Below are positions 5,348-64,000 of a stretch of DNA of 64,000 nt, piece by piece. The translations under genes and the position numbers were made by a program. The notes under the pieces were generated by a model that searched no databases, was not told the origin of the DNA, and saw only the letters and a program-made list of their open reading frames with translations. The DNA is taken from the NCBI GenBank assembly GCA_025594325.1, contig JANHCV010000003.1, positions 2,542,001-2,606,000 on the forward strand. Direction: 5' to 3'. How positions within the stretch are numbered: the stretch's first letter is position 1; each line of letters opens with the position of its first letter. Source of the stretch: Blastocladiella emersonii ATCC 22665 (Eukaryota > Fungi > Blastocladiomycota).

Positions 5348-7217
5348 ATGGCCATGAATGAACCATCGCTGTCACTGCCACCAACAGCACTCAATGCATC
5401 TGCCGTCGCCGCCGCGGCCACGGCGTCCACCCCCATGGCCGCGCTGGTCGGCGACGCGGCGTGGACCACGGCCCTCATCTACACTGGTCCGTCATCCGAC
5501 CACCTCCCACCACCCCCATGCGAGCTCATCTCCCCGCAACGTAGAATCGGTCATCTTCGCGACCTTCGCCGTCGCGCTTTCGCTCCTGTGCTCGATCGCG
5601 ACGACGCTGCGGTGCCGGCGGACATGGACCGCGTTCCACGGGTTCGCCCTCGTCGAGTCGTTTCTCGCGCTGACGGGCGACCTCGTCTCGCTGTCGCTCC
5701 TACTCCTGACGCGCAGCGTGTGCAGCGCCGAGGACGTGCTGGTGACCGTCATCGTCGACGTGATCTCGCTCGTCCACACCTGCCTCGTCGTGCTGCGCCT
5801 CGGCGTGTTCCGCCACGTCTCGCAGGTCGCCGAGCCGTTCCGCCGCGCCCTGCTCGTCGGCACCCCGCTCGTCTTCATCGTCATTGAGGCGACGACGCTG
5901 TCCGACGCGTGCAACGCCGTGTGGGCCATGCCCGCATCATCGACCACGACGTCCATGACCTCGGTCGTCAAGTCCGCGGTCGGGTTTGACCTGACCGACC
6001 TGCCCGGGCTGCCGCAGTGGCTGACCTTCAAGGACCGGCGCACCTGGTTCTCGGTGTGGCTCGGGTACTCTGTCCTCGTCACCCTGTTCGCGTGCGCGGC
6101 GTCGCACAACGCGCTGCGGCGGATCCGCGGGCGGCAGCGGTACCGGGCGCTCGACGACGCGGTGCGCATTGACGCGGCCATGGCGCAGTGCCAGTGGATG
6201 CTGCAGTGGTCGGCGCCCGCGCTCGCCGCCGACTTTGCCGCGTATTTGGGATTGCCGCACCCGCTCAACCTCGCCGTCTCGGCCTTCTTCAACCGCGTCT
6301 TCCTCCTCGCCCAGATCTGGTACCTGATCCTCCTCAACAAGGTCGTCGTCCAGGTCGCCTCGCTGCCCACCGCGGCGGCGGCGGCGGCGGCGGCTCCAGC
6401 CGCGGCTGGGACCGCGCCACTGTCGACTGCGGCGCCCTCGAGCAGCAAGTCGCTCCGCGTCCCCGGCGTGCCCATGATCCTGACCCAGCGCCCGTCCGAG
6501 ACGAGCGTACTCCCCTCGCTCGGCGACGTGGCACGGATCCCGCCCGCAGCGCCGTCACCTACACCGACAATCCACCCGGGCTCGGCCGCCGCGCTCCTGT
6601 CGCCGTTCCTGAGCCTGTCCTCGGCCGCCTCGTCAACGCCGTCGTCGCCCATGCGGCTCTGGGCCGTGTCGGCGTTCGGCCTCGCGAGCCCGCGCGTGAG
6701 CCGCACCTCGCTCTCGGCGGGCGCCAGCAGCCCCAAGTCCGCGTTCGCGTCGCCCGACATCAGCCCGGCCGCGTCGCCCAACCTGTCCGCGCGGCGGAGC
6801 ACCATCGGCGACGCGGTCCGCGCCGCTGCTGCCGCGAGCGCGATCGTCGCACCTCCGCTCCACGGTGGCGCGGGCACGCTGCTAACACGCCGCGGGCTGC
6901 AAGACGACGTGCCGCTCGAGCCATCGCGCCCGGGCGGCGGCGGCGGCGGTGGCGGCGGGACCCTGCCGCTCCCGTCGAGCCTCAGCGCGGCGGGGAGTGT
7001 GGCGAGCGACGACACCGAGCAGCGGCCGTGGACGACACCGCCCATGTACCCGATCACGCGCGACGCGGGCGTGGACACGCGCGACCGCGCGGGGCGCGAG
7101 ATCGCGACGGTGGGGAGGATGAAGTCGGCCAAGTCTGTGGCCTCGACGCACTACGGGACCGCGGCGAGGACGCTGGCGCGGGATCGCGGGTCCGAGGACG
7201 AGGGCGTGGCGCAGTGA
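5348..7217 (+). CDS. Seven-transmembrane GPCR-like protein with long Ser/Pro-rich cytoplasmic tail (intron 5487-5544)
   Basis: Splicing gives MAMNEPSL...TALIYT-ESVIFATFAVALSLL. About seven hydrophobic helices follow, then a ~300-aa low-complexity tail. Confidence 0.6.
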
Positions 7218-7281: not shown

Positions 7282-8253
7282 TCAGTCGTCGTCGTCCGAC
7301 TCATCGTCGCCGTCGCCGAGGTCGCGCTCGCGGCGGCCGTGGTCGATCTCGAGCCCACGCAACCGGCGCGACGGTTCGGCACCGTTGTTCTCGGCGCGCC
7401 GCTTCGCCGCCGTCGCAGCGGCCGCGTCCATGGGGCACTCGTCGCGGGCCGAGAGCGCGCCGTGGCTGAGCAGGATGGCCTCGCAGTCGTCCACGTCAAA
7501 CGCCTCGTTCCCGCCGGCCTGCTCCTCCATGTCGTCGGTGGCGCGGATCAGGTTGGCGACGAGGTCGCCGGCGCGGTAGACCTGGAGGACCGGGAGGGCG
7601 AGGTGGTCGAGGTCCGGGTCGGCGGCGGCGGCGCGGATGCGCAGGAACTTTGCGTGGCCGTAGCGCGTGGCGAGCTCGGTCAGGTGGCGGTTGAGCCGCT
7701 GGCACTCGGGAATGTACGGCTCGTAGACGTGAACCACGACCGAGACCTGCTTGTGCTCCTCGTCCACCTCCTTGAGGAACTGCGACACGCCGATCTCGCG
7801 GAACGCGCCGAACGTCGGCAGCTGCTGCGACCGCCCGGCCTTGACCATGTCGTCGAGGCGCATCTGGCGGTACCGGTCGAGCACCTCGGCCTCGAGCTCG
7901 GCGTCGAGCTCGTCGAGCGTCGCGTCGTCGTCCTCATCCTCGGGACTCGCGGCGGTAGTGCTGCCACCGCGCAGCGCCTGGCGGTCGATCTTGGCGAGAT
8001 AGTCGGCGTGCTTGGCGCGCTTGTCCTCGGCGGCCAGCTGCTGCTGGTAGCGGTAGTCGGCCATGACGCCCTTGGGCCCGGTCTGCGGGCCGCCGTGCAT
8101 CGCAGGCGGTGGACCCATGCCGCCAAACCCCTCGGGCATGGTGGCCTCCGAGTCGGCGGCATCGGGGTCGGGCTCGCCAAACGCGCGCGGCTCGAACGTG
8201 TCGGCGTCGCTCTGCCGGATGGCGCGGATCAGGCGCTCGTCGAGGTCGGTCAT
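7282..8253 (-). CDS. PDCL: Phosducin-like protein 1 (G-beta-gamma/CCT co-chaperone)
   Basis: N-terminal TGPKGVxADY signature, followed by a thioredoxin-like phosducin domain (VVVHVYEPYIPECQRLN...KFLRI...LPVLQVYRAGDLV). Confidence 0.9.
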   Translation of the reverse strand: MTDLDERLIRAIRQSDADTFEPRAFGEPDPDAADSEATMPEGFGGMGPPPAMHGGPQTGPKGVMADYRYQQQLAAEDKRAKHADYLAKIDRQALRGGSTTAASPEDEDDDATLDELDAELEAEVLDRYRQMRLDDMVKAGRSQQLPTFGAFREIGVSQFLKEVDEEHKQVSVVVHVYEPYIPECQRLNRHLTELATRYGHAKFLRIRAAAADPDLDHLALPVLQVYRAGDLVANLIRATDDMEEQAGGNEAFDVDDCEAILLSHGALSARDECPMDAAAATAAKRRAENNGAEPSRRLRGLEIDHGRRERDLGDGDDESDDDD

Positions 8254-8478
8254 GGTGCGTGCGTTGCGTTGCGGGCAGTGTGGTTTGCTTGCTGTCTACG
8301 TCGCCGCGGCGGACAGATGGACGAGAGGAGAAGAGGGAGGAGGGGGAGACGCGTGGCGCGGCGGACACCACGCGTCGGCTGCCGCACGCGCCACCGCCGC
8401 TGCTTCTTCTTCGGGCCGGTCGCTCGGCCGAGGCTCTCGCTCTCCCCCAAACATCACGTAGCGCATGAAATCCTGACC

Positions 8479-9978
8479 ATGGGCCGACCCGTCCCCACCG
8501 CCTCGGACCCCGACCGCGACGCCGCCGCCAAGCTGCGCGCCATCTTTGCCCAGTGCGCGGCCGACCAGGCCATGCGCGATGCCGGCCTGCCCGCCGCCGT
8601 ACGTCTACCTACTCGTCGCGGGATGCCCGGCCACCACAACGCTCACCCGTGTCGGATGCCGTAGATCCAGTCGGTGCCCATGGACTTTGCCGACTTTGTC
8701 AACGCTCTCAACCCCGCCGACCCGTACCTCACGCGGCTCTTCTCGCACGTCTTCACGGTCCGTCCACTGTTGCTGTTGCCCTTACTGTCCACTCACACCG
8801 ACCTTTGACCGCAACAGGAGACGCGCCGCCGCCACGACCAGGCCATCGCGACCCGCGAGGCCGACGCGCGCGGCCGCCGCATGGCCGTGAGCCTCGCGGG
8901 CGCGGGCACCGTCGACCCGTCGGCCATCACCACCCTGCCCGACCCGCCCTCCTCTGCTGCCACACGGGCAGCCGTGTTCCGCTTCGGCGCCAACCGCCCC
9001 ACCGCCGTCGGTATCCCCCGCACCTACGCCGACCCGTCGAGCACCATCCAGTCGGGCGACCAGGCCAGCGCGTTTCGGGCCGAACTGGCCAGCCAGGTCC
9101 AGCAGGCGGCCGCGGCGCGACGCAACCGCAACCGCGCCACGCCGCTGTCGGCGATCCCCGCCCTCGACGACCTCGCCCAGACCGACTTTTTCTCGGGCCT
9201 CGCTGTACCAAACCCCGCCGCTGACCGGCCCGCCTTCACGCTCGGGTCGACCTTCCCGCCCGCTCCTGTCCCGGCGCGCGTCCCCGTCACCAACGGGCCC
9301 GCCTTCACGTTCGGGTCGCTCGGCCAGCCCGTTTTTGCCCCGTCGAACATCCCCCCCGCTGAACTCCAGGCCCGGATCGACGCCCTGTTCCCGCCGTTGT
9401 CGGACCCAACCCCCTCGAGCTCAACGACGGCGGCAGCGGCTGCGGGCCCGTGGTCGCTGTCGGCCTTCTCCCGTCTCCCGCACCTCCAACGCAGCAACGC
9501 CATGCCGCCCGCCCCGCGCTCCGAGACCGACTCGTCGGACAGCGACGACGGCGGCAGCAGTTCGGGCGACGATGACGGCGGCGATGGGGACGAGGACATG
9601 GACCGCAACTCCGACTCCGACTCGGGCTCCGACTCGGACACGGTGCCGCTCCCGTTCCGAGTGGTCGTATCGCCGGCCGACTTCGCCCAGGCGCACGCGA
9701 GCCTCGTCGAGCATAGCCAGTCGCGATCCTTCAGCTTCTCGCGGTTGCTCACCGACACGTGGCGCCGCATCGATCCGCGGTCGACGGCGCGCGACGGGCA
9801 GCAGCAGGACGAGGAGGAGGGCGAGGAACGCGGCGGCGCGTCCTCGTCGCCATTCTCCCCGTGGGCCCGGCTTGGGGACCGTGGCCGCGACCGCGACCGC
9901 CCGTTTGGCCGCGACGGGAGCAGCGGTGGTGGTGCAGGGTCTCGGCCACAGGGCCGCGGGCGTGGATCGCTGGCGTGA
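8479..9978 (+). CDS. Hypothetical low-complexity protein (3 exons) with acidic tract and FxFG-like motifs
   Basis: ATG at 8479. Two GTAC...AG introns (about 8599-8664 and 8722-8817) join MGRPVPTASD..., IQSVPMDF... and ORF 8881..9978 in frame. Confidence 0.6.
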
Positions 9979-10062: not shown

Positions 10063-11025
10063 CTAGTCATCGAGAAAGTCGTCGAGCCACGCCTCCATGC
10101 TCGCCACGGCCTGCTTCGCTGGCGCGGCGGCAGGGGCAGGGGTAGGGACAGGCGCATGCGCGGGCGCGGGCGCGGGTGCTGCGGCTCGCGTGGGCGATGG
10201 CGGGCGTGGTGCAGCCGCGGGAGCGGGTTTCGCGGGCGATTTGGACCGCGAGCGGGACCGCGACTTGGCCGTTGCTGATGCTGGCGCGACGGGCGCGTCT
10301 TCGGCGACAGGCATCTCCTCAGGTTGCACCATCTGCTGCACCTCGGCCTCGGCCGCGGGCGGCGCGAGCCCGGGTACCCGCACCTCGAGCGGGAGCGCGG
10401 CGATCAGCGCCTCAAGCTGGTTCAGGTCAATCGCCGCGGTGCCCTCCTGCGCCGCCGGGTCCGAGTCGTCCTGCAGGTCGTCCCACACTAGCTCGTCCTT
10501 GAACTTGAAGGTTCCCGTGCCGCCGAGTGCTGTGCGGGAGGGCGAAAGTTAGGGTTGGCGAGATCTACGGGAAGCGGAGTGGCCGTACCGCTGCGCGTGA
10601 GCCGCGCCTGGAGCGCCTTGGCCGCCGAGCTGCCGTCGTCGAGGACCGACGGGTCCGCGCTCGTCGCGCCGGCGGCGCTGTTCTCGTCGTCGTCGTAGGT
10701 TCCGGGCACTACCAACAGCACACGAATCAGCTCTTCAAACTTAACACAGATCCACCGCGAACAACATACGCGGCTGCTCGTAGCGGAACGCGTTACTCGT
10801 GACAGCGCGCCGCGCAAACTTGCTGTGGACGCCGCGGCCGTCCGACTGCACGTCCTGCGCGGCCTCGGCGTCGGCCGTGACCACCTCCTCGGCGACATAG
10901 TCCTTGAGCACGGCCTGCCCGCGGCCGCGCGGCGCTTCCGCCGCTGCTGCTTCGCCGCCCGCAGCGCCGCGGTGCGCGGCCTGGTACCGCCGCGAGGCCT
11001 TTTGCTTGTGGGCGTCGGGGCGCAT
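10063..11025 (-). CDS. Aven-like protein (3 exons)
   Basis: The spliced product contains four Aven-like blocks in the right order: KFARRAVTSNAFRYE, GTFKFKDELVWD, IDLNQLEALIAALPLEVRV and C-terminal MEAWLDDFLDD. First intron is 10769-10709. Confidence 0.65.
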
Positions 11026-11359
11026 GGTGCGTTGCAGCTAGTTAAGATACATGAGCCCGCTTGGGGGCGTGGTAAAAGGGAAGAAAAGACGAGAGGTGGC
11101 GGGTCGAGGTCGAAAATCAGAACCATCTCCGGCACGTGCGCGGGAGACACACATGAGAGACGCGTCGCGGCGCGCGGCGAGCCGTGTCGGGCAACCGCGC
11201 CGAAAACCGCGATTGCGTCGGCCGCGACACGTTGTGCGTCAGCCGTGACGCGCCGCGAGCACTGCGTGAAAGACGCTCGGCGGCGGTGGGGGACGCTCCG
11301 AAATACGCCCTTCTCAAAGGGCGCCGTAACCGGTCCAAGCTCTCCACCACCACGACTCC

Positions 11360-12523
11360 ATGATAAACTTAAACACTATGCAAGAACACCTACCCGTCCG
11401 CCCCGCCCTATCCACGACCGCCGCATGCGTCTCGGCCGCAGCCATCGTCGCGTCGCTCGCCCTGCCGCGCGGCTGGACCGACCCGCTCGCGCTGCCCATC
11501 TCGGGCCTGCTCATCGGCGTGTTCGGCATCCCGCACGGCGCCGCCGACCACCTCGTCGACGCGTGGCACACGGCGCCCGATGGTGCGTGGCCGTGGGGCC
11601 GCCCGGCCTTTTTCGGCGGCTACATCGCGGTCCTCGTCGCCCACGTCGTCCTGTGGATCGTCTCGCCCGCCGCCGCCTTCGCCATCTTCCTCGCCACCGC
11701 CGTCTACCACTTTGGCCAGGGCGAGTTCGAGTACCTCGGCGGCCGCGACCCGATCGCGCACGTCCTCGGCGGCGACGGCGGCGGCACCGAGTCGCGCGTC
11801 ACGTCGCCCGTGCTGTACTGCTCGCGCGGCCTCGTCATCCTGTCGCTCCTCGTCTTCGCGCAGCCGTGGCACACGTTCCCCGTCATCGAGGCCATATCGG
11901 GGCTCCCGATGCCCGCGGCCGATACCCACTCGACCGCGGTCCTGTGCACCGCGGGCGTCGTGCTCGGCATCGCACAACACCTCGCTCTCCTCGCCCATCT
12001 CGCACACGCGTGCCGCGGCCGGCCCGCGACTTCGCCCTTCATCTCCGCGCAGCTCGCCAAGACGTGCGGGATCGCCGCGCTGTTCCTCACCTGCAACGCG
12101 TACCTGGCCTTCTCGCTGTATTTCGGGCTGTGGCACTCGCTCGAGTTCTTCCTCACCGTGACCTCGACGCTGCACCTGCCGCGGTCGCGCGCCATCGCCG
12201 TGGCCGTGGTCCCGCTCTCGGTCCCCGTGCTCGCCGCGATCCCCGCGCTCGCCGCCTTCGACTCGGGGTACAGCAGCGACCCCGCCGCGCTCTGGCGCGC
12301 GTTCATCCAGGTCGTCTCGGTCGTCACTACCCCGCACGTGCTGTACCTGCAGGGGTTTGTCGCTGCGCGGAGGGCCATGTACTCGGTGCCACCGCGATCG
12401 TCGCCGGCGGGTGAGGTGGTGGCCGACAAGGCGGAGCGGCCGCCGCGACCAGTCGTCGCGGACTCGATCCGCCGAAACGACTCGGGTCACGGCGCCGTGC
12501 GGCAACGCAGCGCCGCATTGTAG
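11360..12523 (+). CDS. blh: Brp/Blh-family beta-carotene 15,15'-dioxygenase (retinal-forming) homologue, intronless, polytopic membrane protein
   Basis: Family motifs GIPHGAADH, YHFGQGE, YFGLWHS and C-terminal TTPH, embedded in many TM helices. Start may be 11360 or 11378. Confidence 0.85.
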   Translation: MINLNTMQEHLPVRPALSTTAACVSAAAIVASLALPRGWTDPLALPISGLLIGVFGIPHGAADHLVDAWHTAPDGAWPWGRPAFFGGYIAVLVAHVVLWIVSPAAAFAIFLATAVYHFGQGEFEYLGGRDPIAHVLGGDGGGTESRVTSPVLYCSRGLVILSLLVFAQPWHTFPVIEAISGLPMPAADTHSTAVLCTAGVVLGIAQHLALLAHLAHACRGRPATSPFISAQLAKTCGIAALFLTCNAYLAFSLYFGLWHSLEFFLTVTSTLHLPRSRAIAVAVVPLSVPVLAAIPALAAFDSGYSSDPAALWRAFIQVVSVVTTPHVLYLQGFVAARRAMYSVPPRSSPAGEVVADKAERPPRPVVADSIRRNDSGHGAVRQRSAAL

Positions 12524-12580: not shown

Positions 12581-14185
12581 TCAAATGGCAGCGAAAGCGG
12601 CGGCAGCTGAGGGGACAATCTCCAAGTCGGGCGACGCCGCAGCGGCCCGAATCGCTGCGAGGCCACTTTCCATTACATCCGTGTCCGAGAGGACCAACTT
12701 GATGAGAGCGTTGGGCAAGTTGGCAGCAAGTGCATGAGCCCCGGCATCCGTGATTGGGTTCGAGGACAGGTCCAAGCGCTCGACGGTCGCGGGAAGCGAC
12801 AGCGCAAGCGCGCGGATCGCGTCGTCGTCGAGGCGCGTGGACTCGAGGTTCAGGTCCTGGAGACGAGGCGGCATGTTCGCGGCCAGCGCCGCAGCACCGG
12901 CAGACCCGAGCTTCCACGTGGACAAATCGAGCTTGGTGATGGAAGGTGGGATGTGCTGCGGACCGAGGACAGCGACCGCGTCGTCCGTGGCGGCCTCAAA
13001 CCTGAGCGCGAGCTTTGCGAGTGGAACGGAAGCCAAGTTGCCCGGGGTGTGAAGCAGCCGCAGCGAGAGTGTACGACCCGTAATCTTGAGCGAAGTCAGT
13101 CGTGCGAGTGGAGTGTGCGATGGAATGGTTGCTTCCGCAGACGACACCGAGGAATTGTCGCCGAGCGAACAGGGCTTGTCAGCGATGTAGCCAATTGACA
13201 GCTTTTGAAGCAAAGGAGGGAGCGACGATACGATCAATTCGAGGCCTGCGAGGCTTAGCTGGTTGCCTTGCAGTTTGAGAACACGGAGAGAAGCGGGAAG
13301 CCCGCGGACAAGGTCGTACGTGACCTGATCGCTTAGGTTACAATCCGATAGGCGCAGAGAGTCGAGAGATGGAGGAAGAGCGCAAAACAGATTGGAGCTG
13401 ACTGCATTCAAGTCGGATTCCTCGAAGGAAAGCGTCTGTAGGCCTGACGGCCACTGCATTGTGCCGAGCGGTTTGGGAATCGACGAAGGCACGCTGCCAA
13501 GCCAGAACCCATAAAAGGTTGCATCAACCAACGAACGGGGAAGCCGGAGAGCAAGCAACCGGGGAAAGTCGATCGTGCATTCAATAGTGTCAAGGATTTT
13601 AAGCGCCTGGGAAGGGCTTTCCATAGCAACATTGAGCGCTTCGATATCTGCCATCGAAATGAGGGCACGGTTGAGAAAGAGCCTCGAGGTACCAGTTGCA
13701 ACGCCAGCTAAAAGCTTCTTGAGCTCTGCAGCCGTGGTAACATCGTCATCGCCGTCGTCTTCGTATTCGTCAACGGGAAGCCCAAGCACAACACGAGCGG
13801 CGAAGTCGACGCTAACGTTAGCGACATCCAGCACCAGCATCTCGCTGAGCTTGCGGGTGTCGAGGGAGCCGTTATCGCGCCACCACTCGAGCGGCTCGAG
13901 AAAGCGCGCATCCATGGCAGATTTGAGAGCATCCAGCGGGCACTTGAGCGGGACGCCGAGCGCCGCCCACTTGTCGAGCACGCGAATGTTGCCGCGCGCG
14001 GTTGCGCTGGCGAGGGTGAGGTGCGACGCGTGCTGCAAAAGGGCATGCTGGATGCGCGGGGCCATGCAGTGCGGCAACACTCGAGCATATTGCAAGAGAC
14101 CGTCGGCGTCGCCCGGGTCGTGCGCCGCAATCGCGAACACGAGGACCCTCTCGAGGAGTTCAGGGACGTGCATAGCCCTGAACAT
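12581..14185 (-). CDS. F-box-like/ankyrin-like N-terminus + RNI-like LRR protein, paralog 1
   Basis: N-terminal HVPELLERVLVFA (F-box-like) and ATARGNIRVLDKW...LEPLEWW (ankyrin-like). Repeated LPxxLxxLxLxxNxIxxxGAxxLAxxLP units. Intronless, lower GC. Confidence 0.8.
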   Translation of the reverse strand: MFRAMHVPELLERVLVFAIAAHDPGDADGLLQYARVLPHCMAPRIQHALLQHASHLTLASATARGNIRVLDKWAALGVPLKCPLDALKSAMDARFLEPLEWWRDNGSLDTRKLSEMLVLDVANVSVDFAARVVLGLPVDEYEDDGDDDVTTAAELKKLLAGVATGTSRLFLNRALISMADIEALNVAMESPSQALKILDTIECTIDFPRLLALRLPRSLVDATFYGFWLGSVPSSIPKPLGTMQWPSGLQTLSFEESDLNAVSSNLFCALPPSLDSLRLSDCNLSDQVTYDLVRGLPASLRVLKLQGNQLSLAGLELIVSSLPPLLQKLSIGYIADKPCSLGDNSSVSSAEATIPSHTPLARLTSLKITGRTLSLRLLHTPGNLASVPLAKLALRFEAATDDAVAVLGPQHIPPSITKLDLSTWKLGSAGAAALAANMPPRLQDLNLESTRLDDDAIRALALSLPATVERLDLSSNPITDAGAHALAANLPNALIKLVLSDTDVMESGLAAIRAAAASPDLEIVPSAAAAFAAI

Positions 14186-14206
14186 GTTGCATGAAGTTTA
14201 CGTTGC
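13878..14206. repeat. 329-bp direct repeat, copy 1 (copy 2 at 18363-18691)
   Basis: Sequence from cgccaccactcgagcggc to gaagtttacgttgc reads identically in both places (offset 4485). Confidence 0.9.
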
Positions 14207-14323
14207 GCCCAGTTTCGGGGATGCGTGGTGCTTAGGTTCAAGGGGAGAGGTTTGTTGACTTACGAACGGCAGCCGGGACTGCAGCAGCTCAAAAATGCAC
14301 TGGTTTAGGCTCACGTGCCTTGT

Positions 14324-14346
14324 CACATGTTAAATCGACGCGTCTC
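14324..14346 (-). promoter_or_regulatory. Conserved 23-bp upstream element of the LRR genes, GAGACGCGTCGATTTAWCATGTG (also at 16524-16546 and 18793-18815)
   Basis: 22/23 identical in three copies, each 123-139 bp upstream of the ATG, within otherwise diverged flanks. Contains ACGCGT (MCB-like) and CATGTG (E-box). Confidence 0.7.
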
Positions 14347-14713
14347 TCGATTCCATCGTTGCGGTCGCGAAATCGACCAACTCATCTGTCAGCTGGTATT
14401 CCGGGGTGAGCGCAACGGAGACCGACCGTCTGAACGTTCATTGAGAACGGCCTGGCGGCTCGTGCGGCAAGTCACACGTCAAGTCGAGTCGTAGGAGGCA
14501 GTTGGAGTGCGGCTCAATCCCGGGATACAGCTAACGGGAATCTCGTCAGTGTGCACTTGGAAATCCTAAAACACATGCTAGAAGAACAAAAACTCCGCTT
14601 TCCTCTTAAACATGGCTGAATACAAAAGAACTGCCCGCTGGCGATATCTGGTGACGTTTTCGTCGGTGCCGAGGTCTTCAGCATCCCCGGCTTAAACGTC
14701 AGTCAGGACGATG

Positions 14714-16396
14714 CTAGAAATGCAAGCCGAGCACTCGGAGCTCGACTCCCGGTTGAACGGCAGACTGGATCGCCGCCAGCCCTGCAGCCGTTACCTGGTT
14801 GCCTGACAAGAATAGCTTGCGAAGATCGCGGGGGAGGTGATTGGCGAGAATCCGCGCCCCAGTGTCCTCGATCGTGTTCAAGGACAAGTCCAGCGTGGTG
14901 AGAGTCGGTGGAAGCGCTGGTGCGAGAGCTGAAATGGATGTGTGGTCGAGCTTCGCCATCCTCAGGATGAAAATTTGAAGGTGAGGAGGCATGTGAGAGG
15001 CAAGCACCTCGGCGCCCGCTGTCCCAACGTCGGAACCGCTCATGTCAAGCTTCGTGAGCGAACGCATAAGGTTTGGAATCAGTTCGAGCACGCTGGTGCG
15101 GTAAAGCCGGCACCCATGCAGATCCAACGTCAGTAGGTCGCGAGGGAGCGCCTGGACAAGCGCAGCGAGTGTAACGCTTCTTGTCGGTAAGCCTGACATG
15201 AAGGAAAGGGAAAACGTTTTGAGCGAAGAAAGAGGTCGCGAGTTGAAAGCGCGAAAGAGCTGAGGAGCTAGCTTGGTCGTACTAATTTGGAGCCGTTCAA
15301 GGTTGAGTGCGCGAGTGTCAGGCAAAGTGGAAGTTTCTGGGAGTTGCAGCGATTGAGTTGTTGGACTACCGTGGTCGGAAATGCCGCGGATAGAGAACTC
15401 TCGAAGTGATTCAGGGAGCAGTGGGACAAGCGAAGTGAAGCCTGCAACAGTGAGCTTGTCTCCATACAAGACAAGTTTTCGAAGCGTGCGAGGGAGCAAG
15501 CGAACGAGTTCACGCGTGTTCTCATCGTCGAGCGAGGAGGCCAAAACAGTGAGGCTTTGCAGAGTCGCTGGAAGGTTGTGGAACAGGAGCAGGATGGTGG
15601 GTGAGGTCCACGTGAATGTAGTGAAGCTGAGCGACTCGAGTTTCTCGGGCCACACCATGCCTCCTAGCTGAATAGTGAACGGCGACGGCATACTGCCAAT
15701 CCAACGCCCTGAAAACGATGCACCGACCAACGAGGACGGAAGGCGCAGAGCGAGAACTCGAGCCAGGTCAAGCGTGCACACATCGAACTTGATTGTGCGA
15801 AGCGTCTGAGAGGAGCTCGCCATGGCCGCGTTAAGCGCGTCGACTCCGGCTATTGAAATGGGCATCCATTCTACGTTGAGATCCACCGTATTGCCAGCAG
15901 AAACTTGGGCACACAGCTCGTCAACGCCCTCGTCCACGGCGCGCGGGTGTAGTTGCTCGTTCTCGGCCTGAATATCGGCTTTGGCTTCGTTTGGCCACAC
16001 TCCAAGCGCAACCCACGCGTCTGGCAGGATGTCGCGCTCTTCCAACCACGCTTTGATCTTGGCGACGCTTGGGAGACCCGCTGAGCGCCACCATTCCAAG
16101 GTTTCGAGGTGGCAAGCTTCAGTGGCAGACTCGAGGGATTTAAGCGAACACTCGAGCGGGATGCCAAGTGCGGACCATTTGTCAAGTACCCGGACATCGC
16201 CGCGTGCCGTCGCAGCATCAAGCGAAAGGTGGGCCGCATACTGCAAGAGAGCGCGGTCGATGCGCGGGGCCATGGCACGCGGCAAGACGCGCGCATACTG
16301 CAAGAGACCGTCGGCGTCGTTCGGGTCGCCGTGCTGCACGATCGCGTGAACCAAGATGCGCTCGAGGATCTCGGGGACGTGCATAGCCCCGAGCAT
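14714..16396 (-). CDS. F-box-like/ankyrin-like + RNI-like LRR protein, paralog 2
   Basis: Start MLGAMHVPEIL at 16396 aligns with MFRAMHVPELL of paralogs 1 and 3. Same LRR units (LPPTLTTLDLSLNTIEDTGARILA). Confidence 0.8.
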   Translation of the reverse strand: MLGAMHVPEILERILVHAIVQHGDPNDADGLLQYARVLPRAMAPRIDRALLQYAAHLSLDAATARGDVRVLDKWSALGIPLECSLKSLESATEACHLETLEWWRSAGLPSVAKIKAWLEERDILPDAWVALGVWPNEAKADIQAENEQLHPRAVDEGVDELCAQVSAGNTVDLNVEWMPISIAGVDALNAAMASSSQTLRTIKFDVCTLDLARVLALRLPSSLVGASFSGRWIGSMPSPFTIQLGGMVWPEKLESLSFTTFTWTSPTILLLFHNLPATLQSLTVLASSLDDENTRELVRLLPRTLRKLVLYGDKLTVAGFTSLVPLLPESLREFSIRGISDHGSPTTQSLQLPETSTLPDTRALNLERLQISTTKLAPQLFRAFNSRPLSSLKTFSLSFMSGLPTRSVTLAALVQALPRDLLTLDLHGCRLYRTSVLELIPNLMRSLTKLDMSGSDVGTAGAEVLASHMPPHLQIFILRMAKLDHTSISALAPALPPTLTTLDLSLNTIEDTGARILANHLPRDLRKLFLSGNQVTAAGLAAIQSAVQPGVELRVLGLHF

Positions 16397-16861
16397 CAGT
16401 TTGCATAAAGTTTCCATTGCGCCCGGTGAGGGGGGTTCGTGCTGCGTCGTCGTACGCGGAAGCGAGCGTTGGCTCCAGCGGCGGCTGCGCTGAAACACCA
16501 GCGCGCCGCTGACCCCAAACCGTCACATGATAAATCGACGCGTCTCGCGCCTGTCCCCGCGCTGACGCAAGGGTTGCCGGTCGTCGCTCCCCTGTCCATT
16601 GATAATTTTCTCTTCAATACCTGCTTTGAGACACACGCACTCGGTTTGTACAGCTTCAGATTTCCTCCCGAGGCCCCAGTCGCACGGCACCTAAAGGGCA
16701 GCGTTAGCGTTACTCCCTGTAAGCGCTTGACGGCACGTTTACTAACCGCTTTGCTTACGTCTGAAACTAGATAGAACACAAGGTTTACTTCATGCTGGAG
16801 CATGTGCGCGGACGAGCAAGAAAAAAACGCTCTGAAGAACTGCGCACCAGATCATTCACAA

Positions 16862-18670
16862 TCAACCAACGAGATCGGGAGCTTCTTCATCGACCCCATC
16901 GTTGCCGTTGTCATTGTCGTCGTCCATAACTTCAACGCCATTGGCCAAGTTAAGAAAAAAGTTGACCATCGCCTCTTCCTCGTCAGTCAAGTTCACGGTC
17001 AGTTGGAGCTGCGACGTTGGCCCGGCTGCCGCCCGGATCGCAGCTTCGCCAGCGGCGGTCACTTGGTTATTCAATAAGTCAAGCTTGCGAAGCTCTCGTG
17101 GAAGACGATCGGCAAGAAGGTGTGCCCCAGCGTCCGTGATGAAGTTTACGGACAAGTCCAGAGCGGCGAGAGTCGGCGGAAGCGCTGGTGCAAGGACAGC
17201 AATCGATGAGTCGTTGAGGTTCGTCCTGTTAAGCGCCAAAGTCTGGAGCTGTGGTGGCATATTCGCGGCCAGAAGGTTGGCGCCAGCGAATTCAAGGTCC
17301 GAACCGCTCATATAGAGCTTGGTAAGCGAGTGCGGAAGGCTCGGAAGAAGCTCCAGCACACTTGGGTGAGAGAGCTTGCAACTGCAAAGATCCAACATCA
17401 GCATATTGTTAGGGAGCACGCGAGCAAGAGCAGATCCCACATTGCTTCCCACTGGTACGTTTGACACGTTGAAAAGGGATAGGTGTTTGAGCGAGGAAAG
17501 CGGCCGTGAGTGAAATGCGTGGAAAAGCAGAGGAAGGATGTTGGCCGCGCTGATGGAGAGCGATGTGAGAGCTAGCGATTGAGGGCCTGAATCGTCGCGG
17601 ATTGGTGTTGCCAAGACGGGAGCACGCGCGAGTTCTGATGAGTTGGCGGACGAACTGTGGCTATCGGAGATGATACCAACGGAAAACTCTTGAAGCGACG
17701 CTGGGAGCATGAGAACAAGAGCCGTGAAGCCGGAAGAAGTGAGAATGGTTCCGCCCAGGCAAAGCTTCTGCAATGAAGTGGGCAGCAAGCCAACCAGTTC
17801 ACACGAGGCAGCATCGTCAAGCGAGCAGTGCGTGATTGTGAGGGACCTTAGCGACGTGGGAAGATCGTGGAAAAGGAGGGGAACCGTCATTGTGGACAGC
17901 TTAGCCAAGGAAAATCTGAGCGACTCGAGACGCGGAGGCCAGAGCATGGGCGACAGTTCACCAGTTGAAGATGACGCACTACCAATCCAGTATCCAGAAA
18001 AAAACACATTGCGCAACGCTGAGGGAAGTCGCAGAGCGAGCACTCGGGGTAGGTCGAGCGTGCAAGTCTCGAAAGTGGCTGTTTGGAGCGCCTGCGAAGG
18101 GCTCGCCATGGCAGCATTTAACGCATCGACGCCGGCCCTCGAAATGGGCACGAGATTGAGGTTGAGATCCTCGATATAACCAGTCGCAACATGAGCGCAA
18201 AGCTTCTTGACGCCCTCGTCCACAGCAAGCGGGGGAAGCAGGTTATCTTCGTCGGCACCCTCGTCGTCCGGCCAAACTCCAAGCACGGCACAGACATCGT
18301 TATTGGTCTCGAACTGATTTAACCACGATCTGACCTCGTTGGCATCGGGGAGGCCCGTTGCCCGCCACCACTCGAGCGGCTCGAGAAAGCGCGCATCCAT
18401 GGCAGATTTGAGAGCATCCAGCGGGCACTTGAGCGGGACGCCGAGCGCCGCCCACTTGTCGAGCACGCGAATGTTGCCGCGCGCGGTTGCGCTGGCGAGG
18501 GTGAGGTGCGACGCGTGCTGCAAAAGGGCATGCTGGATGCGCGGGGCCATGCAGTGCGGCAACACTCGAGCATATTGCAAGAGACCGTCGGCGTCGCCCG
18601 GGTCGTGCGCCGCAATCGCGAACACGAGGACCCTCTCGAGGAGTTCAGGGACGTGCATAGCCCTGAACAT
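16862..18670 (-). CDS. F-box-like/ankyrin-like + RNI-like LRR protein, paralog 3 (mosaic)
   Basis: First ~100 aa are identical to paralog 1. The remainder aligns closely with paralog 2 (e.g. GVDALNAAMAS.SQ.L....F..CTLDL.RVLALRLPS). Confidence 0.8.
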   Translation of the reverse strand: MFRAMHVPELLERVLVFAIAAHDPGDADGLLQYARVLPHCMAPRIQHALLQHASHLTLASATARGNIRVLDKWAALGVPLKCPLDALKSAMDARFLEPLEWWRATGLPDANEVRSWLNQFETNNDVCAVLGVWPDDEGADEDNLLPPLAVDEGVKKLCAHVATGYIEDLNLNLVPISRAGVDALNAAMASPSQALQTATFETCTLDLPRVLALRLPSALRNVFFSGYWIGSASSSTGELSPMLWPPRLESLRFSLAKLSTMTVPLLFHDLPTSLRSLTITHCSLDDAASCELVGLLPTSLQKLCLGGTILTSSGFTALVLMLPASLQEFSVGIISDSHSSSANSSELARAPVLATPIRDDSGPQSLALTSLSISAANILPLLFHAFHSRPLSSLKHLSLFNVSNVPVGSNVGSALARVLPNNMLMLDLCSCKLSHPSVLELLPSLPHSLTKLYMSGSDLEFAGANLLAANMPPQLQTLALNRTNLNDSSIAVLAPALPPTLAALDLSVNFITDAGAHLLADRLPRELRKLDLLNNQVTAAGEAAIRAAAGPTSQLQLTVNLTDEEEAMVNFFLNLANGVEVMDDDNDNGNDGVDEEAPDLVG

Positions 18671-63132: not shown

Positions 63133-64000
63133 ATGTGCCGGACCGCACCCCGACGTCCGCCGATCTGGCTATGGACCATCCTCCTCGTGATCTTCTTCCA
63201 CCTCGCCGTCGCGGCGACCGTGACTGGCCAGTCCACTTCGCTGCCGCCCATCGTCTTTGGCGCCACGGGTGACTACAGCTCGCCGACGGCCAGCGTCTCC
63301 GAAACCTATCACGGCGGCATCAACGCTGCCTTCTTCGAGATCAACTCGGCCGGCGGGTATCTCGGCCGCAACCTCACGCTCGTCGTCAAAGATGACGGGT
63401 ACGTGCCCGCCCGCGCCGCCGCCAACACGCGCGCGCTCATGGCCGAGAACAACCTCACGGCGCTGCTCGCGGCTTACGTACGCCTCCGCTCGCGTCCGCT
63501 TCAAGCAGGACTTTTGGCTGACGTGACGATTTTGTGTAGGGAACGTACGAGCGCTCAGTGGCCCGACACATCCGAGGTTTGTAGACTGACTTACCCCGCC
63601 TTCTACATGCGTAGCGCGGCCGTGACAGCGTCGCTTCCCGTTGCGCAGAACGCGTCCATGCCGATCCTGTTTCCCTTCACGGGCTCGACGGCGCTGCGCG
63701 TCCCCTTCAACCCGTGGCTCGTGCACATGATCGGCTCGTACCCGGACGAGATGCAGGCCATGCTCGACTACGCGCTCGGCACGCTCATGCACAACCGCAT
63801 CGCCGTCGTATACCAGAACGACACCTTCGGCAAGCCGCCGGCCATGGACGCTGTGGCCGTCCTGACCCGGCTCGGCCTCCCGCCGCACTCGGTCAGCTCG
63901 GTTCAGGGCAACTCGGGCAACGTCACGGCGGCGCACGCGGCCATAGTCGGCCAGACGCGGTATCCGCAGTCGGTCCTGTTCTTTGGACTCGCGCTCGAGG
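63133..64000 (+). CDS. N-terminal part of a secreted or membrane receptor with a type-1 periplasmic-binding-protein (Venus flytrap, LivJ/Peripla_BP_6-like) domain; runs off the window
   Basis: Signal peptide (IWLWTILLVIFFHLAVAA), then GINAAFFEINSAGGYLGRNLTLVVKDDGYVPARA, PILFPFTGSTALR, RIAVVYQNDTFGK. Absent from the ORF track because there is no stop codon within the window. Confidence 0.85.
   Translation, partial: MCRTAPRRPPIWLWTILLVIFFHLAVAATVTGQSTSLPPIVFGATGDYSSPTASVSETYHGGINAAFFEINSAGGYLGRNLTLVVKDDGYVPARAAANTRALMAENNLTALLAAYVRLRSRPLQAGLLADVTILCRERTSAQWPDTSEVCRLTYPAFYMRSAAVTASLPVAQNASMPILFPFTGSTALRVPFNPWLVHMIGSYPDEMQAMLDYALGTLMHNRIAVVYQNDTFGKPPAMDAVAVLTRLGLPPHSVSSVQGNSGNVTAAHAAIVGQTRYPQSVLFFGLALE

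Follow-up and report, generated by a model that had tools for sequence, protein, structure and literature searches.

Which enzyme makes the retinal on which fungal vision depends? In the blastocladiomycete Blastocladiella emersonii, on which fungal vision is chiefly studied and from which the optogenetic tool CyclOp/RhGC was taken, phototaxis requires endogenous carotenoid-derived retinal (norflurazon abolishes the response and added retinal restores it; PMC4046227). That paper and later ones name the cleavage enzyme as a 'carotenoid dioxygenase/oxygenase', and the literature assigns retinal formation to a CCO-type oxygenase of B. emersonii, AIC07011. We analyzed a stretch of 64,000 nucleotides from the genome of strain ATCC 22665 (contig JANHCV010000003.1, positions 2,542,001 to 2,606,000, forward strand; referred to here as the window), in which a gene that we call blh encodes a bona fide Brp/Blh-family protein and, judging by its sequence, a candidate retinal-forming dioxygenase of the Blh type. 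A first-pass annotation of the window, made from the letters alone, had suggested that this gene could be a horizontally acquired, alternative retinal source for fungal vision. The part of that suggestion that placed a Blh-type candidate in a fungus with rhodopsin vision stood, and the part that made the gene a horizontally acquired oddity did not; we regard blh as a credible and neglected candidate source of retinal for the rhodopsin vision of zoosporic fungi.

A Brp/Blh-family protein with a predicted membrane fold

The blh product matched the Pfam profile PF15461 (BCD, beta-carotene 15,15'-dioxygenase) with an E value of 1.4e-35 and a score of 123.7 bits against a cut-off of 28, the match covering profile positions 2-261 of 267, and it scored 116.1 bits with the NCBIfam model TIGR03753 (blh_monoox, Brp/Blh), above the curated cut-off of 95.25. 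The family assignment of the first-pass annotation is therefore borne out by both profiles, well past anything that chance would produce, and the motifs that it had listed are all present (GIPHGAADH at residues 56-64, HFG at 117-119, FGLWHS at 255-260 and TPH at 324-326). An AlphaFold2 model (mean predicted local distance difference test [pLDDT] of 87.7 and predicted template modeling score of 0.87) consists of an all-helical bundle from residue 19 to residue 342, followed by a disordered tail. The bundle contains nine to ten long helices, with which the hydropathy segments agree, so that the model predicts a polytopic membrane protein built of alpha-helices, about nine of them transmembrane; bacterial Blh has been modeled with nine helices (bioRxiv 10.64898/2026.08.06.743266). 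Neither Foldseek against the Protein Data Bank (PDB), nor a shape search of the ESM Atlas, nor a sequence search of the PDB gave a meaningful structural match, which is consistent with the statement in the same preprint that no solved Blh structure exists.

The natural points of comparison are the Blh of uncultured marine bacterium 66A03 (Q4PNI0) and the haloarchaeal Brp/Blh proteins, which have been characterized as the beta-carotene 15,15'-dioxygenases that serve proteorhodopsin and bacteriorhodopsin systems. With these B. emersonii Blh shares its Pfam and TIGRFAM family, its polytopic all-helical architecture and the motifs GIPHGAxDH, YHFGQ, WHS and TxPH. Its identity to the nearest bacterial homologues is only about 25-30%, and it differs from characterized prokaryotic Blh in having a phenylalanine in place of His-192 (numbering of the marine protein), an extra loop at residues 125-148 and a disordered C-terminal tail of about 45 residues; unlike the genes of the prokaryotic systems, moreover, it is nuclear-encoded in a eukaryote and forms no operon with rhodopsin or crt genes.

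Association with carotenoid genes and rhodopsin-guanylyl cyclases

CarX, Cco1 and other RPE65-family CCOs are the characterized retinal-forming enzymes of Dikarya. Their fold is unrelated to that of Blh, in that they are soluble seven-bladed propeller iron enzymes whereas Blh is an integral membrane helical bundle, but the predicted reaction (beta-carotene to retinal) and the predicted role upstream of a fungal rhodopsin are the same for CCOs (PF03055) and for Blh. Blh could plausibly supply retinal in place of CCO/CarX-type enzymes.

A physical link between blh and carotenoid synthesis genes is seen in Paraphysoderma sedebokerense, in which blh (L087:6001-7428, plus strand; GCA_025602915.1, JAHLJZ010000006.1) adjoins two carotenoid genes. 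Next to it are the exon open reading frames (ORFs) of a crtI-family phytoene desaturase (7687-9320, minus strand), which, when searched singly, match positions 56-209, 224-442 and 449-498 of TIGR02734, and the third member is a bifunctional gene for a lycopene-cyclase (CarR) domain and phytoene synthase (10192-12021, plus strand). Taken together, this trio (L087:6001-12021, about 6 kb) would provide every step that leads from geranylgeranyl diphosphate to retinal.

We also compared the distribution of Blh with that of CyclOp, setting Blh-positive taxa against published CyclOp reports. Eight taxa carry both Blh and a reported rhodopsin-guanylyl cyclase (B. emersonii, Allomyces, Catenaria, Paraphysoderma, Entophlyctis helioformis, Chytriomyces confervae, Rhizoclosmatium and Synchytrium microbalum). 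The fungal Blh proteins tabulated by Rius et al. 2023 come from Catenaria, Chytriomyces confervae, Rhizoclosmatium and Synchytrium microbalum, all four of which are species with reported CyclOp. Rhizophydiales have been reported with CyclOp but without CCO, and Blh is present in Polyrhizophydium and Gorgonomyces, both of which belong to this order. Published surveys of fungal vision took only RPE65/CCO proteins into account: Table S3 of Galindo et al. 2022 makes clear that 'carotenoid oxygenase' has this meaning, and the Catenaria entries there are ORZ40243 and ORZ31212, and the Catenaria Blh proteins (ORZ29366 and ORZ37408) are not among them.

The alternative that we rate highest is that Blh is an active oxygenase that does not serve CyclOp, producing apocarotenoid signals from gamma-carotene or other carotenoids, or acting in carotenoid turnover, while a CCO makes the visual retinal. 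This would accord with the literature, which takes the CCO genes of B. emersonii as the retinal source, with the promiscuity of bacterial Blh towards several carotenoids (bioRxiv 10.64898/2026.08.06.743266), and with the Glu-Phe/Tyr change that blastoclads alone show where His-192 would lie, which could alter the active site; we nevertheless judge it unlikely, given that the blh-carB-carRA cluster of Paraphysoderma fits a beta-carotene-to-retinal module, that Blh is present in species bearing the rhodopsin cyclase, and that it is found in Rhizophydiales, an order in which CCO has been reported missing.

Conservation of the putative iron ligands

We read residue conservation from an alignment of 60 sequences, 38 of which are labeled as prokaryotic. 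An AlphaFold-based re-analysis of Q4PNI0, described in the same source as the only biochemically characterized Blh (bioRxiv 10.64898/2026.08.06.743266), proposed an iron plane formed by His-21, His-78 and His-188 together with His-256, and these four proposed planar ligands correspond exactly to His59, His117, His259 and His326 of the B. emersonii protein (Table 1). Asp63 is likewise conserved in all alignment rows that cover its position. The re-analysis places His-192 outside the plane; an older mutagenesis-based homology model, as cited in that preprint, regarded His-192 as essential and named it as a fourth ligand. At this position the residue is phenylalanine in Blastocladiella, Allomyces and Catenaria, tyrosine in Paraphysoderma, and serine or alanine in most chytrids. 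Among the prokaryote-labeled rows, 26 of 38 have histidine and the other 12 have serine, alanine or valine (Lewinellaceae, Catalimonadaceae and Roseivirgaceae are among the groups without it), and Phe263 is therefore no argument for inactivity; a histidine here is not a defining character of the family as a whole. That the protein might be a catalytically dead relic, a pseudo-enzyme created by the loss of a canonical ligand, is suggested by Phe263 itself and by the older model, but we consider it very improbable in view of the intact ORF, the retention of the four other histidines and of Asp63 across phylum-level divergence, the prokaryotic homologues that also do without His-192, and the position of that residue away from the iron plane in the re-analysis.

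Distribution among fungi and descent of the gene

An exhaustive HMMER search, in which a profile built from Blastocladiella and Allomyces was run against 1.84 billion cluster representatives, returned 641 proteins at E <= 1e-3, the best of which, after the query's own genus, were all fungal. Orthologues occur in five genera of Blastocladiomycota including Blastocladiella (the others being represented by Allomyces javanicus, Catenaria anguillulae, Paraphysoderma sedebokerense and Coelomomyces lativittatus) and in at least 11 species of chytrids, among them Irineochytrium, Chytridiales sp. JEL0842, Rhizoclosmatium, Zopfochytrium (two copies), Cladochytrium, Chytriomyces hyalinus, Polyrhizophydium, Quaeritorhiza, Gorgonomyces and Entophlyctis. 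B. emersonii Blh is about 50% identical to the protein of Catenaria anguillulae (A0A1Y2HS41) and 41-46% identical, depending on the alignment, to those of Allomyces, and the Blastocladiales share a WH[SA]xEF motif. The chytrid proteins are longer (400-530 amino acids, with a long insert after the first histidine motif) and apparently spliced; in five chytrids (Rhizoclosmatium, Polyrhizophydium, Cladochytrium, Entophlyctis and Zopfochytrium) the gene range exceeds the coding length, which suggests that their orthologues carry introns.

Outside the fungi there was one holozoan match, in Pigoraptor chileana (P0082, EukProt), a unicellular relative of animals, which keeps His-192 and whose placement has a tree support of 20/53. 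One further member of the clade (P0133) is eukaryotic, since the metagenomic contig that carries it also encodes talin, RFC and XPG. A word search using a profile of 14 aligned eukaryotic sequences gave only 16 matches and no new named eukaryotes. The nearest prokaryotic relatives, from a locus scan of 185,579 species genomes with an 8-sequence alignment, belong to Rhodothermota, Balneolota, Bacteroidota and Ilumatobacteraceae and are 23-34% identical.

Trees were built in IQ-TREE using the LG+C20+F+G4 posterior mean site frequency (PMSF) mixture model, as a quick tree of 103 rows and a careful tree of 62 rows. Both contain a single fungal clade, supported in the careful tree by an ultrafast bootstrap value of 100 and an SH-aLRT value of 98, and this clade splits into Blastocladiomycota and Chytridiomycota, matching the phyla (support, in the same order, of 99/96 for Blastocladiomycota, 100/90 for Blastocladiella with Catenaria, and 98/85 for the chytrids). 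Support for the sister group of the fungal clade is 70/80. Two shared characters, Trp312 (present in every fungal-clade row and in 2 of the 38 prokaryote-labeled rows) and the loss of His-192, add support for a single fungal clade. In the unconstrained trees Coelomomyces, which has a branch length of 3.5, was placed well away from the remaining blastoclads; constraining it to group with them gave a higher likelihood (+12.8 lnL), the approximately unbiased (AU) test does not reject that grouping (p-AU 0.795), and its stray placement is a long-branch effect.

These results bear directly on the origin of the gene. Horizontal acquisition by this genome, as envisaged in the first-pass annotation, is not supported: a broad vertical distribution, named beforehand as the observation that would speak against it, is what we found within the fungi. 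Recent or lineage-specific transfer of a prokaryotic blh into Blastocladiella, for which one might cite the intronless gene, the overwhelmingly bacterial and archaeal make-up of the family and the bacterial contigs on which the nearest matches outside fungi lie, was rejected and deserves next to no credence, given orthologues across two phyla that form one clade (100/98), the lack of a close prokaryotic donor (best identity 30-34%), a composition typical of the host at third codon positions, and the apparent introns of five chytrid orthologues. The fungal clade, the ceiling of about 34% on identity to any prokaryote, the host-like composition and the apparent introns together argue against recent import, and blh has probably been passed down by vertical descent since the ancestor that Blastocladiomycota and Chytridiomycota share. 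An ancient transfer from bacteria, into the fungal stem or an earlier eukaryote, is possible; these data give no root.

Gene order around blh is conserved between Polyrhizophydium and Entophlyctis, which is another indication that the gene has resided in fungal genomes for a long time. Among B. emersonii, Catenaria and Allomyces we found no synteny around blh, except for a multi-copy Peripla_BP_6 cyclase-type gene: in Catenaria (L084:9797-14335) and Allomyces (L085:15655-20807) a receptor/cyclase-like gene of this kind is found at a distance of 4-9 kb from blh, and a homologue runs past the end of the window (63400-64000, plus strand), about 51 kb from blh, where, the gene being multi-copy in B. 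emersonii, the linkage may be due to chance. A 3-hydroxyanthranilate dioxygenase gene is found 4-6 kb upstream of blh in both Rhizoclosmatium (L086:1409-2134) and Coelomomyces (L093:2861-3780); the pair (tblastx E about 1e-37) could be a relic of ancestral synteny, or a coincidence given the number of locus pairs. Gorgonomyces and Polyrhizophydium, both Rhizophydiales, have a prenylcysteine-lyase/amine-oxidase gene immediately upstream of their blh (L088:7634-8908 and L089:4814-6780).

A proposed route to the visual chromophore

In Blastocladiella and Allomyces the predominant carotenoid on record is gamma-carotene. By extension from its family, B. emersonii Blh would be a polytopic all-helical membrane enzyme that binds Fe2+ via the four conserved histidines and cleaves the central 15,15' double bond of beta-carotene in an O2-dependent reaction, yielding all-trans retinal; gamma-carotene may also be a substrate. 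The carotene would be supplied by enzymes of the fungus itself (lycopene cyclase/phytoene synthase and phytoene desaturase), and the retinal would serve as chromophore for the rhodopsin-guanylyl cyclase BeGC1/CyclOp, which steers zoospore phototaxis. The gene itself is no recent import and has probably descended vertically within these fungi, as described above. We consider it likely that this reading is correct as a whole, that is, that a vertically inherited Blh enzyme makes retinal from carotene for BeGC1/CyclOp. The family membership, the conserved catalytic residues, the confident fold model, the fungal monophyly, the host-like composition and the Paraphysoderma cluster are what we observed; from them we infer an expressed gene, an active enzyme with this substrate, and Blh rather than a CCO as the enzyme that feeds CyclOp.

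Several points weigh against this interpretation. B. emersonii also has CCO-type oxygenases, and Blh may therefore be redundant or use another substrate. The blh gene of B. emersonii is not clustered with carotenoid or rhodopsin genes in the neighborhood that we inspected, and among the 11 fungal loci inspected the cluster is found in one, Paraphysoderma being the only one of them that keeps blh beside carB and carRA. The histidine that the older model places in the motif WHSxxH is replaced by Phe263. Fungal monophyly is model-dependent, in that FastTree under LG+CAT separated the Blastocladiales from the chytrids (a topology that we set aside in favor of the PMSF mixture-model trees), and the trees left out the Blh proteins of cryptophytes, dinoflagellates, Thecamonas and Planoprotostelium.

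A broader proposal, which we offer tentatively and with somewhat less than even confidence, is that Blh, and not CCO/RPE65, may have been the ancestral retinal synthase of the CyclOp 'eye', with a blh-carB-carRA module, of which Paraphysoderma would retain the physically intact form, present alongside the cyclase in the last common ancestor of chytrids and blastoclads, inherited together with it and lost together with it when swimming spores were abandoned; CyclOp-bearing chytrids without CCO could then still make their own chromophore. If Blh is the working retinal synthase, the smallest set of genes thought of as the 'eye kit' of early fungi would have to be redrawn, there would be an explanation for the cleavage enzyme reported missing from CyclOp-bearing Rhizophydiales, and fungal rhodopsin tools could be co-expressed with a membrane retinal synthase adapted to eukaryotes. 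If it is merely redundant with CCO, the outcome is no more than a routine improvement of the annotation, in which a 'hypothetical protein' becomes a Brp/Blh-family dioxygenase.

That fungi possess Blh was known before, as Rius et al. 2023 list fungal accessions and a later preprint (bioRxiv 10.64898/2026.08.06.743266) repeats them. In the literature that we searched, we found no mention of the B. emersonii blh gene itself, of the strongly supported fungal Blh clade and its parallel with the reported distribution of CyclOp, or of the Paraphysoderma blh-carotenoid cluster; the fungal-vision papers in that search assign chromophore synthesis to a CCO-type 'carotenoid oxygenase' and leave a Blh-type gene unmentioned.

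Gene model

The features of the locus are listed in Table 1. A word-indexed search of 5.8 billion proteins identified the blh product as H9P43_003719 of B. emersonii ATCC 22665 (100% identity over 93% of the length), whose public annotation is 'hypothetical protein' only. As the first-pass annotation had stated, the gene is intronless: a single ORF spans the whole BCD domain and a conserved N-terminal helix, and translation could start at the ATG at 11360 or at an in-frame ATG at 11378 (Met7; 381 amino acids). The public model is shorter (361 amino acids, with the N-terminus 'MPIVAS') and truncates this helix. Its start can be reproduced solely by combining an out-of-frame ATG with excision of a 13-nucleotide GT...AG stretch, which is probably an annotation artifact and no real intron, and which would account for the database entry; 13 nucleotides are implausibly short for an intron, and we therefore did not adopt the 361-residue model. 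The uninterrupted ORF encodes RPALSTTAACVSAAAIVASLALPR in the N-terminal segment, where residues 14-37 are conserved with Allomyces and Catenaria and are modeled as a helix with pLDDT values of 88-98. Because this segment is conserved and predicted to be helical, we favor the intronless model of 387 amino acids (or 381, from Met7) over the annotated one. At the other end of the protein, the C-terminal tail has no counterpart in Allomyces or in bacterial homologues.

Table 1. Features of the blh locus (positions in the window)
Feature	Position	Strand	Remarks
Blh homologue, complete intronless coding sequence	11360..12523	+	387 amino acids plus stop; uninterrupted 387-codon ORF
13-nucleotide GT...AG stretch	11429..11441	+	Excision plus out-of-frame ATG 11425 gives the annotated 'MPIVAS' (read from sequence)
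BCD / Brp-Blh domain, residues 51-328	11510..12343	+	PF15461 and TIGR03753 matches
His59 codon, GIPHGAADH	11534..11536	+	His-21 of characterized marine Blh; putative iron ligand; invariant in 60/60 homologues
His117 codon, YHFGQGE	11708..11710	+	His-78; putative iron ligand; invariant in 60/60 homologues
His259 codon, FGLWHS	12134..12136	+	His-188; putative iron ligand; invariant in 60/60 homologues
Phe263 codon at the His-192 position	12146..12148	+	Motif WHSLEF instead of WHSxGH
His326 codon, TTPH	12335..12337	+	His-256; proposed fourth planar iron ligand; His in every row covering the position
C-terminal tail, about residues 345-387	12392..12520	+	pLDDT 47-73 (AlphaFold2); lineage-specific, low-confidence

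Genomic setting and composition

The window has a G+C content of about 72%. The blh coding sequence has a GC fraction of 0.709 and a fraction at third codon positions (GC3) of 0.912, which lies inside the range of the other genes in the window (0.87-0.935), and the host-like composition claimed at first pass is thus confirmed. Its placement in a fungal genome is confirmed as well, by the identity of the product to the B. emersonii protein and by the eukaryotic character of the neighbors that we checked (phosducin and leucine-rich repeat [LRR] genes). Composition by itself already makes both contamination and a recent arrival improbable, and contamination or mis-assembly was rejected on the length of the contig (2.64 Mb), the host-like GC3 and the eukaryotic neighbors.

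In B. emersonii the neighborhood of blh consists of a phosducin-family gene, orphan ORFs and LRR genes. The phosducin-family gene (7282-8253, minus strand; Pfam E value 5e-27) lies about 3 kb upstream of blh, beside an ORF of 619 amino acids (5358-7217, plus strand) that has no Pfam match. In Allomyces javanicus the gene adjoining blh encodes a G-alpha subunit (L085:11448-13164), which may be compared with the phosducin gene near blh in B. emersonii, although this may be a coincidence. Immediately downstream of blh are three paralogous LRR genes (12581-18670, minus strand), which form a low-GC island, with GC3 values of 0.64-0.68 against about 0.9 in the surrounding genes.

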